The notes under the pieces were generated by a model, which worked only from the letters and a program-made list of their open reading frames with translations, ran no database searches and was not told the origin of the DNA. Below, one piece after another: positions 32,580 to 41,898 of a DNA stretch of 64,000 nt. The translations under genes were made by a program, and so were the position numbers. Source of the stretch: Pelomyxa schiedti (lineage: Eukaryota > Protista > Evosea); assembly GCA_020536535.1 (NCBI GenBank), contig JAHLWZ010000833.1, positions 1-64,000 of the forward strand, written 5' to 3'. Position 1 is the stretch's first letter, and each line of letters begins with the position of its first letter.

Positions 32580-35078
32580 TCATGGATCATTTACACACAG
32601 GGTGTCATCCAGGACAGTAGACAATGAAGCACCCTCCCTGATTCTCTTGGCGTTGGCAGCAAGTGCACGCTCATTCAAATCAGCCAGCACAGTGTCCACG
32701 CACTCAGCCACAATGAGGCTTGCCGGTCTGTCTGGTTCCGCTGCAACCCGCTGCATCACAAGCTTATGGGAAGTGAAGTTAGCCACAGAAAAAGTTGTGG
32801 TTTGAGTTTGTGTGGTTTGAGGGCTAATATTATAATGTATGAGCGAATTAGGGTTAGAAAATTAGCCAGCACACACCATATGGAGGCGTTGTAAAGCCAG
32901 AGCCCAGGAGATTCCAAATGCGGTTTGGTTGGTTTGCTCGGATCCAGCCACGAGCTTCAGGGTAGATGCGAGCTTATTCATGAAAGATTTGTGTTGTGAT
33001 TGGGGAAGCTCCGCTCCGTCAACAACCACTTCCGGCGCAGGCTGCTTATTGACATCTAAGTCCCTGTGTTTTGCCAGAAGAAGTGTTTGGTTAAGGGAAA
33101 TTGTGGGACTGAAAGTTTTCCACACCAGATTTTACACAGGCGGCTGAGCATTTGCAGTGACGCTTTCTGTACTTCTATTTGCTCTGTATTTTGTTCGCTG
33201 TACTCTGGTGAAATAATAGTGAGACAGGAGTAGGAGGAAATGATATCCGGACCTAGAATGATTCCCTTGCTTTTCATTGTTTTTAGATGCATCGAGACTT
33301 GTTGTGCTGCGACAAACGATTCTCGAACGGTTTCTACTTTGTTTGAGATAAAGTTCTCCAAATCATCAATGTACCTGGTAGATACAACTTGGTGGCCTCA
33401 ATTAACTCCTTATTTGGGATAAGTGGGATGGAAAAGAGTTAACTGTAAATACCTTCAAGCCACTGTTTGGCTTGTGCAGAGCTCCAGAGAAATTACACGT
33501 TTCACAGCGCCATTTTTTCCTTCTTCTCCAAATTGAGATATCATCAGAATCTAGTTGAAGTTGGTCTACAACCAACTGCAAATAAATTGGAATGTTACTG
33601 CATTTGGGGCACCTCTCAATGTCCTCTATGCATGCAGTTGATGCAACAGTAATGAAAATTCCTGAGAGAAATCCAGAGCGTGAGTTTTCATAGCCCGCAT
33701 TTCCCAACATACCGATTATTTTGCTATCAAGGTTGAGATTCTCCAAAACTTGTTTCATAAGCTCAAGTTCTGGAGATCCACATAAATCCGCTTTGTTGAG
33801 AACAAAGGCGATTGGAATTCCCGCAAAGGTCTCCTTGCATAATCTTTTTGGAAAAAAACAACCAAATAAATAAAAAGGGAGTAGAAAATCAGATGTCAGG
33901 AGAATGGACTTTGGGAAAGATAAAGCGCACTTGGCTTCAAAGGGCAGAAGCCTGCAAACTGTACAGTCAATAACATACCAGACAACATGGATGGCATTTC
34001 TCACAAATTGTTGTGTTGTCCTGATAAAACCCTCAGCGGTATCCATCTCAATACCCTAGTTGCTATTACACTACCGTTACAATATCATAACTCGGAAACC
34101 TTTGAGTCATAAACAAGGACAGGTGTCTCGTATCCTGATACTGAAGCAGGTGAGGAGCTGGAGGAAGTGGAGAGTGCAGGACCAAATGCCATATTCATGA
34201 CACTAGTTTTTCCAACTCCTGCGTGGGAATGTAAATTAAATGCCATGATTTTTTTTTTTTCAAAAAAAAAAAAAAGGACAACCTTTTCGCCCAACTACAA
34301 GTATATTTGGTTTCAGTTGCTGCGATGTTATCTCGTCAAATGTTTTACATAGCACAGACTCCAATGCTGGCATTTGGAAGCCTATTATGTATTAATCCTA
34401 ATTTACTGGTACTACGAGTCAAACCTGGACCCTCCAATGCTACAGAATTAGTGGTAGCAGTTCCAGTGCTAGCTGATCCAACATTTAAAGGTGTAACAAT
34501 ACCTAATTAAAACCAAGGGGTTATTTTCGAAGCCCTTGCAAATCACAAAAGTACCCAAAAATAAGAACACAAACCCATAACTCAAAAAAAGGAAGGCTTG
34601 TTCCACGAAGTAGTAATAGCATACCCGAAGGTTGTACAGAAGCACTGCCAGATTGCGTGCCAGGCAGCCCGACGTTGCTCCCTGGCGGCACCGACGACAC
34701 GCCAACCCACATCGTCGTCGTGGCCATCGACGTCGTGGTTGCTGTGCCGCCTCCTCCCATAATCGCGGTGATGGGCGCGGACAATACGCCGGGCGTCTGT
34801 TGCTGCTGCTGCGCGGGCTGCTGCTGGGCGATGGCACTGGTTATTATGGGGCTGGGGTTTGCGGGAGGGATCGACGCCGACGAGGACGAAGAAGACGTGG
34901 AGGAGGACGAAGAAGAGGACGACGACGCCGTGGTCGTGGGCGCGGACGACGATGCAACCCCCGTGATGCTGGTGCTCACGACGGAAGAAGGAGGCGCAGT
35001 GGTTGGGGCCACCTTATCCGCCGACGACAGCGCCGGAGGTATCGTCATCTCGCTCACACGAAACTGCGACGACGCCAT
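32580..35078 (-). CDS. P-loop GTPase of bacterial GTPase+DUF697-like type, with zinc-ribbon insert and low-complexity N-terminus
   Basis: KPNILVVGRKG-VGKTS (G1), VYDSKG (G3), IHVVWYVID, VLNKAD (G4), CPKC...CETC, ESFVAAQQVS and QMLSRLCKIW. Confidence 0.7.
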
Positions 35079-35264
35079 TGGGGTATGATATGTACCAATA
35101 GCGAAGGAACCGCGAAGGCCAATCGAGAAAAAAAAAAAAAAAACCAAAGGAAGAGGGGAAAAAAGGCCAAAAAAATAAAGCCGAAGCTTAGTGTAAACAA
35201 CATTAAAAGTGCACGAACGAGATGATCGGTGCCCAATAATTAACAGTGATTCCCCTGCATCCGC

Positions 35265-35831
35265 TCAACTGTCCAACTGTACAAGGAGTGAGACGAGGGC
35301 CTCAGTGGCATCCTTCAAGTAGCCATCACGCAATAGGTTTCGAGCCTGAGGCAGATCAGTCTCGGCCAGGGTCAGCACCCAAGCGATGGCGTCGTGGAAT
35401 GCCACGTGCTTCGCATAAACGTCTTTCCAGGAGGGCTTTGGGGGAGGCCCCAATGTCCCACCGGTGGCCGGCGATTTTCTGTGGGTCACTCTTACGGAAT
35501 GGGAAGTGCTGACTGGGGTCCCGTTCATGGCCTTTTCCAACCAACATCCAAATTCACAGTGCTGGTAGTCTTTGGCCTTTTTCTTCATTTGCATAAGGGC
35601 GTCTTTTGGTTGACCCTCCCTGTATGATGATGTTAAGAACCAACAGTAATGAGTGCGGCTCTGTACCTTGAACCCCCAACTTCTAGTAGGAGTTTGCTGA
35701 TCCACTGTCTGTGGAGTTCAATAGCGCGTTTGATGTCTGGTTTGGGGGGCGGCTAGCAGGAGGTGAGACGTGTAGTGTATGGTACTATCTACCTGTTCTT
35801 GCTGCGTTCTTACAGAGGCAGTACAACCCAT
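35265..35831 (-). CDS. Stand-alone CZB (chemoreceptor zinc-binding) domain protein with N-terminal MGC lipidation motif, 3 exons, 159 aa
   Basis: Exons 35831-35793, 35752-35667 and 35619-35265 with GT-AG introns of 40 and 47 nt join in frame: MGCTAS...AIELHRQWISKL...KDYQHCEFGCWL...AKHVAFHDAIA...ATEALVSLL, giving the His, Cys, His, His ligand pattern of CZB. Confidence 0.8.
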
Positions 35832-36562
35832 GGGTGATGAGAGAATAACTGGGAACAAGTGGGTTTAATTTAACTGAAGACCGAAGTTCTCATCCACTGT
35901 TTGCAGGCGGTGAAAAATGTCCCGTCTAACGGAGCTGAACATTCGGCTTTATGCTGACGAAAGAGGAAGAAAACATCACAATCAAGGGTGGCTCGTCCCT
36001 TTACTTGGCAAATAAGGCATAGACGACAGAATCCTGGAAATTTCGAAATGTCTCAGATTTACAGATGTGGAACCCCGAGACGGAATGAGCTTGGATTTTA
36101 GCTGGGTGATCACATCAGGGAGTTTTGAGCTGAACTACAACTCGCTTTGGTGGAGCATACTCTGTCAATGAGAAATTCTTTGTTACAAGACTGGCAAAAA
36201 ATTTTTCGTTTTTAGTCTGTCAGCTTTTTTTTTTTTGTTGGGCTGTGGGATGGAAGATTTGAAATAGTGTCAGGCAGTGCCTGTGTGATGCCTACCTACT
36301 GATGGAGAGGAGCCCTTTTAGCAGATTCCATTCCACAAGGTGGATCTTTCCTGCGTCAGAGCCCATAAATGGGGTTGTGGTTTGTGCCGAGCTTTCAGTC
36401 TGGGGAAAAAGTGTCAATCAAAAAAAGGCAACAGGCAATGCCTGGTGGCGGCTGGTTAATGTGTAAGGTGCGTAAAAACAAACAAACAAGCAAACCCAAA
36501 CAATTAAATCCCCTGCTCATAGCCCAACGCGGTAAAGGGAAGAAACTTGCTTAGAATCGGGA

Positions 36563-39500
36563 ATGATCTTGCTGCGATTTTCGCTTTTCTTTTTTCTTCT
36601 GGGATTCCCACTATCTCTCCTTTCTTCTGCTGCAGGTGTTTATTTATCCAAAGAGTTAGAATCACTCCCAATTCTTACTCACCTTTCCTAGCACAAAGTA
36701 CTCCAGAAGGTGAATGTGGAGTGAGGTGCTGGCTGGATAATTTGATTGTAGTGATTCCTGATCAGCAAGCAGAATTCAATTATACCATTGCTCGTGTGCT
36801 GCATGAAGTTAGTGTGAATTTGACATCCATAAAATGCAGCCTGTCATCCCTTGGGCCTGTTTCTTCTACCACGAGGCAAGAATTCTCGGTTCCTTCCGGT
36901 GATCAGATTGGATTTCTGAGCCTGCAAATGAGAAATGTGAGCCTGGAATGCAGTGCTGTCTTTAACATGACAAACACCCATAATGGGAAAAGCACTCACG
37001 AGAATGGATTGGCTAATGCTGTTCTGTCTGAAATGGATGCTGAACTCACTCTGACTCTGACGCGACCGGGGTCAACCTGTTCTCAGGCCCTGATCGCCGG
37101 GGTAGAGCACTGCAATATATCACAGCCAAACCTCACTGTGACTACTGTCCCCGAGCCGGCATCCTCTTCAAGTACAACAGTAACCTCGGAGTTGCTTTAC
37201 CAGGCCATGAACTCTCTCTTTGGACTGCAGTTTAATATCTGTGGTATCGTGTCAAATATCATTTCCACCAATGTGTCCGCTGGGATGTCTGATATCCACT
37301 CCAAGTTGGAGACAGCGGCAGCACCAAGACCGCCACCATTTATTTCCTCTCCAGACGAGGGAGCCTTGGATTTAAACACGTCTCCATTTCTGAATGCCAT
37401 CCAGTACGTGGCAAATGACTTCATTGGAACTGATGGAATAGTTGGCTTGAACTTCGTGTTTTCGAAGTTAACTAATGGCACAGGTTTCGTTCAGCCATAT
37501 TGCAGTTTATCAACTCACCTTTGACTATAGGTTACCTCAACATCAGTAGTGGGGATTCCAACAGAACTTTCACAGTGGTCGTTCCAAACTTTGGTTCTGT
37601 TGAGGTGAAAATGAAGAAAATTTGGATTGGAGGGCTGGACAGCTGGAATTTGTTTGACGTACTCGAACCTCTTGATGCCTATACCCTCTGGTCTGGAGTA
37701 GCACTCAAGTCATTTGCAATTGGCGCAGAAATTGAAATTTCCTTGGATATTGTAAACTCCTCATACATAGTTGACCCCTATATATTGGAAGAGTCGATTA
37801 CATTGTCAGTCGAACTGTCGCAGATAAATATATCCTCAGTGATGGATGTAGCTCTGTATCTTGAAAGAGCCGAAAGTTATACTAACTCCCAGTGCCGTGA
37901 CATAGGATGCTTCATAGCATTATTTGAGGAAAACCAAACAGCACTTGTTAACATCATTTTGAACATGTCTGATGTGGATATGGCTGTAAAATTAAACAGT
38001 GGTGGTTCTGATAGTGATGATATTGATAAGTTAGTGAATGACCTTGCAGTATGGTTCATAAGCTCTTTCATAGACTGCGCTCCCGATGTTGTGAGTGGAA
38101 TTGCAGCGGGACCAGTCCTCACCGCTGTCAACTCAGAAATTACTACTGTCCTGTCAGATTCCGAATGTGAGCCTAAAGCTGATGCACGAGGTAGTATGGA
38201 ACTACCAAATCCCTATTCTACATTCGGCTCTGCTTTTGGCGCTGTAGTTGCTTTTGTGGTACTAGTATGCATTGGAATTTATGTCGATGGCTACTTGAAA
38301 TCCAGAGTTCAAATAAAAACTATTGTCCCTAGTGAATCTGAGATCATTACTCAAGACGGTTCAGCACCAAAGTACCAAGACGCAATATCTTCCCCACGGG
38401 CTGAGAAGGCTCCACTGCTGGAAAAAGGATCGAAGACAGAGCCTACCCCAAGTGGTCCATGCCTACTGTTGCATCCCAAACTCCATGGAATTGTGAGATA
38501 CGGCATTCCTGGCCTGATTATGCTCACAGCAGTAATGCTGATCTCCGGGAATACCTCAGGTGGTGCTCAGGTCATTCTGGTCGTAGTCACAAGCACAAAG
38601 CGCATTATTTCCTTTGACCCTATCTTTATATTTACCTTAGGAAACAGTATTCGAGTAAGCAAATTTCAATCAATCAGTACTCCAGCTAACCCTTCCAACA
38701 GGATATGTGGGAAGCTGGAATATGGCCCCTTTCCTTGCTGATTGCCGTTTTCTCTGGTGCTTGGCCTTATTTAAAACTGCTGTTAATGTTTGGCGGCTGG
38801 ATTGCTCCCGCTTGGATCCTTTCTGTAAAAAGGCGAGAACTCTTGCTGATGATCTTAGGTACTTTCAATGACGGATAACGTAAGGTCTCACACCCATCCT
38901 AGATGCACTTGGAAAGTGGTCTCTTATTGACTCCTACGTGATGATTCTCACCTTGGTTGGCTTTAATCTGAAAATCGAAATGCCTGTCCATGAAACAGAA
39001 ATGTACGAGCCCTCTGGCGACTTTGTCATTGAAGTAGTCGTGGAACCTCTTTACGGTTTTACGATATATATCCTTGCGACAGCTGTGTCTCTCACGTTAT
39101 CCCACATAATTGTTGCGTTGCATAGATATAGCGAGGGTACTGCTAAAAGCAGTGAACCACAGGGCAAAGACGGGAATCCTCCCTCAGCGTGCAATGCCCT
39201 TTGCGTTACAGCTTTGCCATCAAGGAGCATAAGAGCCCGAGTTGCCTTTGCAGTCACTGTTGGGGTGCTGATCACCTTTGCCTTGGTTCTTCTCCTTATG
39301 GGGATTATTTATCCCTCTTTCAAGTACGTGTTTGGCGGTGCCGTGGGGTGGTTCCTTACTGCTACTGGGCAGCCCATTGAGGCAGAATACTCTGTCCTTT
39401 CACTCACCAGAGCAATTCCGCGCAGTACGTGCGGTCTCAAGATGGCTGCCACCAGAGTTATTCAGGTGGTTTTTGCAACTACATCCATATTTGCACCACT

Positions 39501-40017
39501 TGGCCACCTTGTTTCTCTGGTCATACTTTGGTTCATGCCAATGTCAGTTCGAGCCCAGAGAGGCTGGTACACACTTTGTGAAGTTCTCAATGCCTGGTCG
39601 TCAATTGATGTAAGTATTCCAATAAGAATAATAAATGTGCTCAACAACAAAACATCACGAATTATGTATTACCCAATAACATTACATATTAAATACTTTT
39701 GGCAAGTGCACTCACCCAAGACCCATTTTTAAAAATGTAAATAGGTATTCATCGTGGCCATAATCACGGCGCTTCTGGAAATACAGCAATTCGCGCAATT
39801 CATCGTCGCCGGGCCGTGCGGCGGCGTCAACGTAATTCTGGAGGACCACCTGGGCGACGGCGCCACGTGCTTCGACGTCGACGCCAAGCTGCTGAGCGGG
39901 TGCTGGCTTCTGTTCGGAGCCTGCGTGGTGTATGGAGTAACCTCGGTCTGGGTCATGAGGGTGTGTCACCAGGCCTTGCTGGGAGGCAGGGGTAGGACCC
40001 CTACCTCTGTCAACTAA
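36563..40017 (+). CDS. Signal peptide + large beta-rich luminal region (BPI/TULIP-like) + two PqiA (paraquat-inducible protein A) membrane domains
   Basis: Exon 1 MILLRFSLFFFLLGFPLSLLSSAA; FTLGNSIRDMW..LIAVFSGAWPYLKL..LGKWSLIDSYV and a second repeat YSVLSL..FAPL..NAWSSIDVFIVA match the PqiA WSxxD motif. The TULIP-like call is inference. Confidence 0.75.
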
Positions 40018-40099: not shown

Positions 40100-41430
40100 T
40101 GATGGATGTATTAATACTTGCATTTTTGATCTTTGGTTTTCTCCTTCTTGTCATGGGTGTGATTGACCAACTGGATCATGGGGGGCAAAGTGAAGGTCAG
40201 TGTTTTGCTCTCTGATAAACCAAGGGTGAAGAGAGTGAGGACAGCACCAAGGTTTTTTTTACCACTTCTGAGGAGAAGGTTCACCTGTGGGCAGAAGATT
40301 TTTGTACCAAAGCTATGCAAGGAGAAATTGGAGATCTCTTCCAATCAATCTACCTCTTTTGCCACTAATGTCTCAACAACCTCCTGACTCTGAGGTGGAA
40401 AACATCATTACTTACTGTGGAGAGAAAAACACCATGAGGGCCAACAGCAGTGACTCTGAGAGTAATGGTGCAAAAGGATCTAAGAGAGGCTTCCAAGAAC
40501 AGATATGAGGGGCATGGCACCTGCTCCTGCTGGTACTTATCTCATAAGGCAATGAACTCCAAAGTGTGGGAAGTATGTATTCTTCATAGCTTGTGCTGTG
40601 GGACTTACCTTGATAGGATTTTAAACCTGTTCTATCATAGTGGAAACTGTGATTGAGGCAAATGCCTGGTGTTGGAACTACACCTGGGCTTAAAAAACAA
40701 GCAAAATCAGAAGCAAAGACCATTGAATATCCACAACCAAAGAAATCATTCTGCACTAATTATGAGCCTCTTCACCATTTGGTCAGATAACCAGTTTCAA
40801 GCAGCTAAAAAAAGCTCTTGTTTCCTTCCTGTGTAACTGAAAGTTTATTTGCTGGGTTGTTGTATACAATGTTCAAGGTTGTAAACTTGTTACATGCACA
40901 GTAATGAATGTAATTCACCAGATTCCAATTTGAAGATTGTGCTCTTGCTGTGTACCAATAGCTCCACCACCTCTAAGAGATGATGACATACATCCTACCA
41001 ACAAGTACTGTACAGTACAAGTGTTCAAGAAGTACCTCAAACTCCACCTTCTGTGACAACAACAACTTCAGTGCTAAAACCACCAAAAACCACAGTTTTT
41101 TTTTGTTTTAACTGTTTATAGAATATCTGGGGATTTCTCATTTCTCTTCTGAATTGCTGGTGACATTACAAGCTGCACTGTGAGACACAGACCTACAGCT
41201 TGCAGGAAAGTCATCTGCAAATGCACAAAGGAAAGCCATCTCTGACTGGGCTGCAAAAACTGGAAACATGGAAACAACAAAAACAGTGGTGGCTTCTATC
41301 AAAGAAAAGCAAGCACAAGCTGTTCCTCAGCAACAGTCATGCAAATGCAGACCTTTAGCTTCACAAGTGGCACCCATTCCCAAGGAGACTGCCACAGCAC
41401 CTCAGCCAAAACAACCCCAAAAGCGTTAAA
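40100..41430. pseudogene. Decayed coding-like or mobile-element sequence, CpG-free
   Basis: Short interrupted frames on both strands; no CG dinucleotide between 40057 and 41423; family not identifiable. Confidence 0.35.
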
Positions 41431-41898
41431 ACCTTGGCTCCAGACCACAATGATACAACCAACTTGAAAACCAGTGTCCTGAAAACACTCCAGTGGCTTG
41501 CAAAAGTTGTGAAAATTTTTTTGAAAAAATTGAACTGGGCAGAGGAGGGTGGTGTTGGCCGCAGAAAAGTCGCAGGCAACTCGTGTGTTGGTGGCTAAAC
41601 AAGGAAACCGCATCCCGGGACAACTTTCGCATTTGTCGAAACCAAGTTAATGTCGGGACCGTTGTGGCGGTTTCCAATGTAGTACCAAAGTGTGTCGTTT
41701 TGTGCGGCTGCGCATTCTATTGGGTGTTCCGTGTAGGAACAATCACACAACATTTTTTCGTCATTCCTTACAATCTTTGCGACAATATTTGTGTGGCTTG
41801 TGGCATTCAGTCAAGACTGGGGGTGAATTGGTCGATCTTTCTGGCGTGTATCGGCACTCGCTATGGTTTTAGCGACAATATTTCGACTGATATCGACA

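Follow-up and report, generated by a model that had tools for sequence, protein, structure and literature searches.

Pelo_12089 of Pelomyxa schiedti is encoded on the minus strand at positions 35265-35831 of the 64,000-nucleotide stretch of DNA that we analysed (the window). Its three exons join into 480 nt, encoding 159 amino acids and a stop codon. The features of the locus are:

35793-35831, minus strand: exon 1, 39 nt, residues 1-13, with the start codon and the MGCTAS N-terminus
35753-35792, minus strand: intron 1, 40 nt, GT-AG, phase 0, skipped in RNA contigs X1 and X2
35667-35752, minus strand: exon 2, 86 nt, residues 14-42, with a proline linker and CZB helix 1 (helix 20-40 of the model)
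35620-35666, minus strand: intron 2, 47 nt, GT-AG, phase 2, skipped in RNA contigs X1 and X2
35265-35619, minus strand: exon 3, 355 nt including the stop codon, residues 42-159, with the remainder of the CZB four-helix bundle
35711-35713, minus strand: His27, first predicted zinc ligand, part of HxxW, matching the first zinc-binding His of DgcZ in the alignment
35556-35558, minus strand: Cys63, cysteine of CxFGxWL and predicted zinc ligand, invariant in 52 of 52 aligned rows
35544-35546, minus strand: Cys67, additional cysteine in position 5 of the motif, found in Pelo_12089 alone (1 of 162 domains)
35442-35522, minus strand: Ser/Thr/Pro/Gly-rich loop insertion, about residues 75-101, copy-specific, pLDDT below 50 at 77-89
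35394-35408, minus strand: His113-x3-His117, second and third predicted His ligands, invariant in 52 of 52 aligned rows
35186-35264, minus strand: 3' untranslated region, covered by RNA contigs

This three-exon model with its 40- and 47-nt GT-AG introns had been proposed from the sequence in the original prediction, and it agrees exactly with the NCBI record of Pelo_12089. Each of the three exons, compared separately, was identical to its part of the record, and exon 3 alone, used as a query, retrieved a single database protein, the 159-residue Pelo_12089. Both predicted junctions were borne out by RNA: contigs from runs X1 and X2, which represent one sample, omit exactly 47 and 40 nt at the intron sites, with CT..AC ends, and DNA run X4 retains both introns. 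An in-frame stop lies 11 codons 5' of the ATG, and RNA contigs show that the genes flanking Pelo_12089 on both sides are spliced as well. Pelo_12089 is confirmed as a genuine eukaryotic, spliced and transcribed gene of the CZB family.

The neighbouring minus-strand gene (window 33300-35080) has multiple introns, five of them seen in RNA, and encodes P-loop-like GVGKTS and VLNKAD motifs. It is possibly a GTPase; a Pfam search of those of its ORFs that were tested gave no match. On the plus strand, divergent from Pelo_12089, a transcribed multi-exon gene for a membrane protein spans 36547-39732, and the last of its ORFs tested matched PqiA weakly (E 0.006).

The Pfam CZB profile (PF13682) matched Pelo_12089 with an E value of 9.2e-5 and 23.2 bits, and residues 27-120 span essentially the whole domain (profile positions 1-60 of 64). 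The gathering score of the profile is 29.4 bits, and we therefore class Pelo_12089, on its sequence, as a divergent CZB-family homolog and not as a curated Pfam member. The copy-specific loop insertion lowers the score: the spacer between the cysteine motif and HxxxH is 43 residues long, against a median of 20, an insertion of 23 residues. The threshold was passed by the related proteins Pelo_16838 (39.9 bits), P0014 of Mastigella (38.9 bits) and those of Mastigamoeba (60 and 63 bits).

The motif CX(L/F)GXW(Y/L), a criterion for the family (PMC8262984), is present as CEFGCWL at residues 63-69, and profile alignment places the 3His/1Cys core (H27, C63, H113 and H117) in register with the ligands of DgcZ. 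Together with C67, these residues are where the motifs named beforehand were located. Across 52 aligned rows, in all of which Pfam CZB was detected, C63, H113 and H117 are invariant and H27 is conserved in at least 90%. A phmmer search of the PDB with the single Pelo_12089 sequence returned nothing useful and profiles were needed; a profile of the eukaryotic family found the CZB domain of DgcZ (3T9O) at E 1.9e-5, with H, C, H and H aligned. The additional redox switch suggested earlier for Cys67 fared worse. A cysteine occupies this position in 1 of 162 domains and in none of the paralogs, and motif position 5 is variable and exposed to solvent (PMC8262984), so sequence comparison does not support Cys67 as a conserved redox switch.

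Structure prediction yielded the four-helix bundle that had been anticipated. The AlphaFold model of Pelo_12089 is a helical bundle (pLDDT 84.5) whose top four matches in a shape search of the Atlas were CZB clusters (TM 0.58-0.64), and a paralog model reached a TM of 0.67 to the CZB-like middle domain of DosC. Foldseek gave zero matches at E <= 0.001 for Pelo_12089 or the paralog model, and a wide VIA structure search recovered generic four-helix bundles alone. In a comparison with the PDB, 3T9O (Z 10.0, rmsd 3.4, 100 aligned) tied with unrelated four-helix bundles, and the predicted structure is therefore consistent with CZB rather than decisive.

Pelo_12089 is one of four paralogs. The other three, Pelo_15370, Pelo_16838 and Pelo_10333, are each 28-32% identical to it and all are split by introns. 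The four ligands are retained in 4 of 4 copies, the cysteine motif varies among them (CEFGCW, CPMGHW, CEFGKW and CPMSRW), the Trp of HxxW is replaced by Leu in two, and the motif Gly by Ser in one. Some of the paralogs bear an automatic Pfam CZB tag, yet are named hypothetical.

A profile search of 1.84 billion representatives returned 441 matches, of which we inspected the best 150. Mastigella eilhardi has a CZB protein starting with MGCGGS that keeps all four ligands (P0014, EP01105_P015717), as well as a TKL-type kinase (residues 213-464) with a C-terminal CZB domain and all four ligands (P0174, EukProt P019712). This kinase fusion is known from one transcriptome assembly, and the top three Pelomyxa matches to the kinase have no CZB domain next to them. 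In Mastigamoeba balamuthi, m51a1_g2303 and g6376 are tandem CZB proteins and g2302 has one CZB domain, all without an MGC start; g2302 and g2303 adjoin each other, and may represent either a tandem array or a single gene model that was split. The Archamoebae relatives thus share the CZB domain and ligands of Pelo_12089 and are all unnamed or "hypothetical" in their sources, but the Mastigamoeba proteins differ from it in being mostly tandem and without MGC, and one Mastigella protein in its fused kinase. Among the best 150 of 441 matches, the remaining hits with a name were bacterial.

Four further intron-split MG(C)-CZB genes, starting with MGCGAS, MGCGAS, MGCAAS and MGSSTSC, belong to one eukaryote in the metagenome ERZ21831265 (ENA). 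Three of the four combine MGC with the complete set of ligands, MGSSTSC being the start of the fourth. This organism, represented by contigs of 19-144 kb (L022-L025, L039), is intron-rich and has a GC content of about 38%; three of its CZB genes have an intron position in common with Pelomyxa paralogs, and it is probably an uncultured relative of Pelomyxa. The common intron, of phase 1, immediately precedes the residue that stands 13 positions before the zinc cysteine, and is found in five genes of the two organisms. The corresponding intron of Pelo_16838 is one codon off, and in Pelo_12089 the intron is another one, located seven codons further upstream. Apart from the CZB gene itself, no synteny was found between the four Pelomyxa loci and those of ERZ21831265.

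Acylation signals are a recurrent feature of the amoebal proteins. All four Pelomyxa paralogs start with MGC, as does Mastigella P0014, and the MGCTAS start of Pelo_12089 matches the PROSITE-type myristoylation pattern. So do seven of the eight other MG(C)-type amoebal starts, the exception being Pelo_10333 with Pro at position 6. An MG(C)-type start is retained in nine divergent genes from three organisms, which suggests that it is under selection, and an MGC start occurs in none of the 137 other hits within the best 150 of 441 profile matches. The P. schiedti genome encodes NMT and many DHHC enzymes. The acylation-type MGCxxS start noted in the original prediction is thus conserved at Gly2 and Cys3 among the paralogs, and we infer that Pelo_12089 is probably myristoylated at Gly2, palmitoylated at Cys3 and anchored to membranes.

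In Src-family kinases such as Fyn and Lck, a Met-Gly-Cys-x-x-Ser/Thr start, like that of Pelo_12089, directs dual acylation and membrane anchoring (PMC2132482, PMC2200018). The cargo of Pelo_12089 differs from that of dually acylated eukaryotic signalling proteins, being a bacterial zinc-sensor domain. G-alpha-i and the kinetoplastid calflagins have the same type of dual-acylation start. We take calflagins to be the functional analogue, acylated and metal-sensing without a catalytic domain, but with EF-hands and calcium. A subgroup of bacterial CZB proteins without MCP or GGDEF (P0005, P0007, P0011, P0040, P0062, P0078, P0107 and P0143) opens with MG-hydrophobic-hydrophobic-x-W, a stretch that may form an amphipathic membrane helix and would then parallel the amoebal anchor.

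As originally claimed, Pfam revealed no output domain fused to CZB in Pelo_12089, nor in the paralog Pelo_16838, and the P. schiedti genome gave no MCP or GGDEF match. This architecture is not a eukaryotic novelty, however: 27.1% of CZB sequences are CZB-only, a class whose function is undescribed in that survey and some of whose members may be incomplete (PMC8262984), and most of the nearest non-amoebal matches among the best 150 of 441 are 110-135 residues long. With the bacterial CZB domains (PF13682; E. coli DgcZ 3T9O, H. pylori TlpD and Salmonella McpA), Pelo_12089 shares the order and register of the 3His/1Cys core, the CxFGxWL motif, the four-helix bundle and the cytosolic topology. Unlike them, it is eukaryotic and intron-containing, carries the Gly2/Cys3 signal and the 23-residue loop insertion, and has no MCP or GGDEF domain; lacking these, it belongs neither to the TlpD-like chemoreceptors nor to the DgcZ-like cyclases. 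With the bacterial CZB-only proteins it shares the stand-alone form and a similar size, and the MGC start sets it apart from them.

We examined the origin of the family in trees of bacterial and protist CZB domains. The 74-row tree, which omits the long-branch rows P0141, P0057, P0122, P0115, P0088 and P0118 and the second domain of P0013, placed 15 eukaryotic domains on one side of a branch with support of 91/93 from a bootstrap that had not fully settled. Quick trees of 169 and 56 rows, with long-branch rows included, split the eukaryotic domains, the intruders being long-branch multi-CZB chemoreceptor rows. With these rows restored, a tree joining the eukaryotic domains was 16.8 log units better than the quick tree (AU p 0.78). 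Given bacterial rows selected by similarity to the Pelomyxa profile and an alignment of about 122 columns, the result is compatible with a single clade of the 15 eukaryotic domains.

Pelomyxidae and Mastigamoebidae are treated as sisters (PMC10711303), and one old transfer from bacteria, before these lineages split, is likely as the simplest reading, though not proven. Since CZB is spread over 21 bacterial phyla (PMC8262984), the direction would be from bacteria to amoebae. The bacterial origin proposed at the outset is supported, and the case gains strength from the presence of the family across Archamoebae. A single-protein scan of GTDB for a donor gave one weak match, from which no donor could be named, and a phage search with the CZB protein gave no match. 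Because the CZB-only form is common in bacteria, the amoebae probably took up a stand-alone CZB gene and added the anchor afterwards.

What might these proteins do? We see an even chance that the amoebal CZB proteins work as zinc-occupancy switches, held at a membrane and acting in trans on a partner. Myristoylation of Gly2 and palmitoylation of Cys3 would hold Pelo_12089 on the cytosolic face of a membrane, where H27, C63, H113 and H117 would bind one Zn2+. The zinc would be lost when free Zn2+ drops, for example when oxygen or peroxide shifts zinc speciation at an oxic-anoxic boundary, or alternatively through oxidation of Cys63. Its loss would loosen the Cys-bearing helix and alter the contact with the partner. 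As no chemoreceptor or GGDEF protein was found in Pelomyxa, the output would have to be eukaryotic, and the likeliest candidates for the partner are eukaryotic protein kinases or other signalling proteins of the membrane. A kinase is suggested by the TKL-type kinase-CZB fusion of Mastigella, the sole direct hint of a eukaryotic output.

In bacterial CZB domains a single Zn2+ is coordinated tetrahedrally, and signalling is driven by its release (PMC12871147). A 2026 preprint argues that CZB has soluble Zn2+ as its conserved input, that this zinc is a messenger of external redox state and oxygen, and that oxidation by HOCl is a special case seen in bacteria associated with hosts (PMC13370339). 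HOCl, named as a signal in the original prediction, is weakened accordingly; for Pelomyxa, an anaerobe that lives free, it is an unlikely signal, and a better fit is zinc serving as a proxy for redox state or oxygen. A more specific and more doubtful extension, which we offer tentatively, is that the acylated CZB proteins use free Zn2+, sensed at the membrane, as an oxygen proxy, signal in trans to TKL-type kinases (in Mastigella, within one fused protein) and steer movement away from oxygen, as a bacterial redox-taxis input rebuilt into a eukaryotic pathway.

Several observations count against a zinc-occupancy switch. The zinc affinity of bacterial CZB is femtomolar (PMC13370339), and the site may be saturated in a eukaryotic cytosol. 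Pelo_12089 has a sub-threshold Pfam score, a long branch and the 23-residue insertion, and the structural CZB matches tie with generic four-helix bundles. The kinase fusion comes from a single transcriptome assembly, nothing equivalent appeared at the top three kinase matches in Pelomyxa, and the Mastigamoeba copies are without MGC.

Tight zinc binding by bacterial CZBs (PMC13370339) would suit a membrane-tethered zinc buffer, scavenger or chaperone with no signalling role, keeping Zn2+ or passing it on near transporters or at phagosome or symbiont-vacuole membranes, as would the missing output domain of the Pelomyxa copies, the vacuole-enclosed symbionts of the host (PMC10579272), and the tandem repeats of Mastigamoeba, which would multiply the sites. 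Yet a protein of 15-17 kDa with a single zinc would store little of it, the divergence of the four paralogs and of their motif variants suits the tuning of a sensor, and the Mastigella fusion hints at regulation; in addition, no zinc-transporter gene was noticed beside the ERZ21831265 loci. We consider such a buffer rather unlikely.

Direct oxidant sensing, in which HOCl, HOBr or peroxide oxidises Cys63, zinc is released and avoidance or a stress response follows, appears improbable. The mechanism was shown for TlpD and DgcZ, whose Cys-bearing motif is conserved here (PMC8262984), and an early warning would benefit an anaerobe reported to be without catalase and peroxidase (PMC8887013). However, a free-living anaerobic amoeba is not exposed to neutrophil HOCl, hydroperoxides are poor oxidants of the CZB cysteine (PMC13370339), and Cys67 is not conserved. 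Somewhat less plausible again is a scaffold or adaptor role for an acylated four-helix protein located at the flagellum or at membranes, with zinc only structural or another metal bound in its place. In fold, bundles of the vinculin, talin and FAT types are matched about as closely as CZB, and the HxxW Trp and motif Gly are substituted in some paralogs, but the four ligands are kept across the family and CZB is the only family indicated by sequence evidence.

In a survey of 10,140 sequences, CZB was essentially only bacterial and the single eukaryotic hit, the sole earlier report of its kind, was dismissed as contamination (PMC8262984). A contaminating or misassembled bacterial or endosymbiont gene has practically no probability for Pelo_12089, even though the assembly derives from single cells with prokaryotic symbionts (PMC10579272): it is refuted by the introns removed in RNA, the intron-containing neighbours on both sides, the four paralogs, the relatives in three other eukaryotes and the intron position common to five relatives.

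The acylation-tagged eukaryotic CZB family of Archamoebae is real, whereas its function is predicted from sequence. It is an expressed, intron-bearing and expanded family, present in at least three named genera, and we found no literature linking CZB to Pelomyxa, Mastigamoeba, Archamoebae or amoebae in a search to which most subscription papers were external. The known gene transfers in anaerobic protists mostly involve metabolic enzymes; here, a sensory module appears to have been rewired with eukaryotic parts, namely an acylation signal and a kinase fusion. The family may serve anaerobic amoebae in sensing zinc or oxygen, and it offers an entry point to the unexplained CZB-only class and an independent test of "zinc as redox messenger" against "HOCl sensor" in a host without neutrophil exposure. 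If the oxygen-proxy reading is true, it would represent the first eukaryotic CZB-type zinc-occupancy sensor and a candidate answer to how these anaerobic amoebae sense oxygen.

There were further matches within the P. schiedti genome. One (C542) was not a CZB. The end of another contig (G000:C660; L017, L036) is a 96% match to C1199:1-774, a stretch with the 5' half of Pelo_16838, and is broken off where the contig ends; this near-identical partial copy is an allele, a duplicate or an assembly overlap. A third is a 3' fragment only: G000:C693:2475-2574 is an 81% DNA copy of the 3' end and untranslated region (window 35226-35341). The same contig carries a 79% copy of window 41021-41449 (G000:C693:491-888), and both matches (L037) are duplicated fragments.
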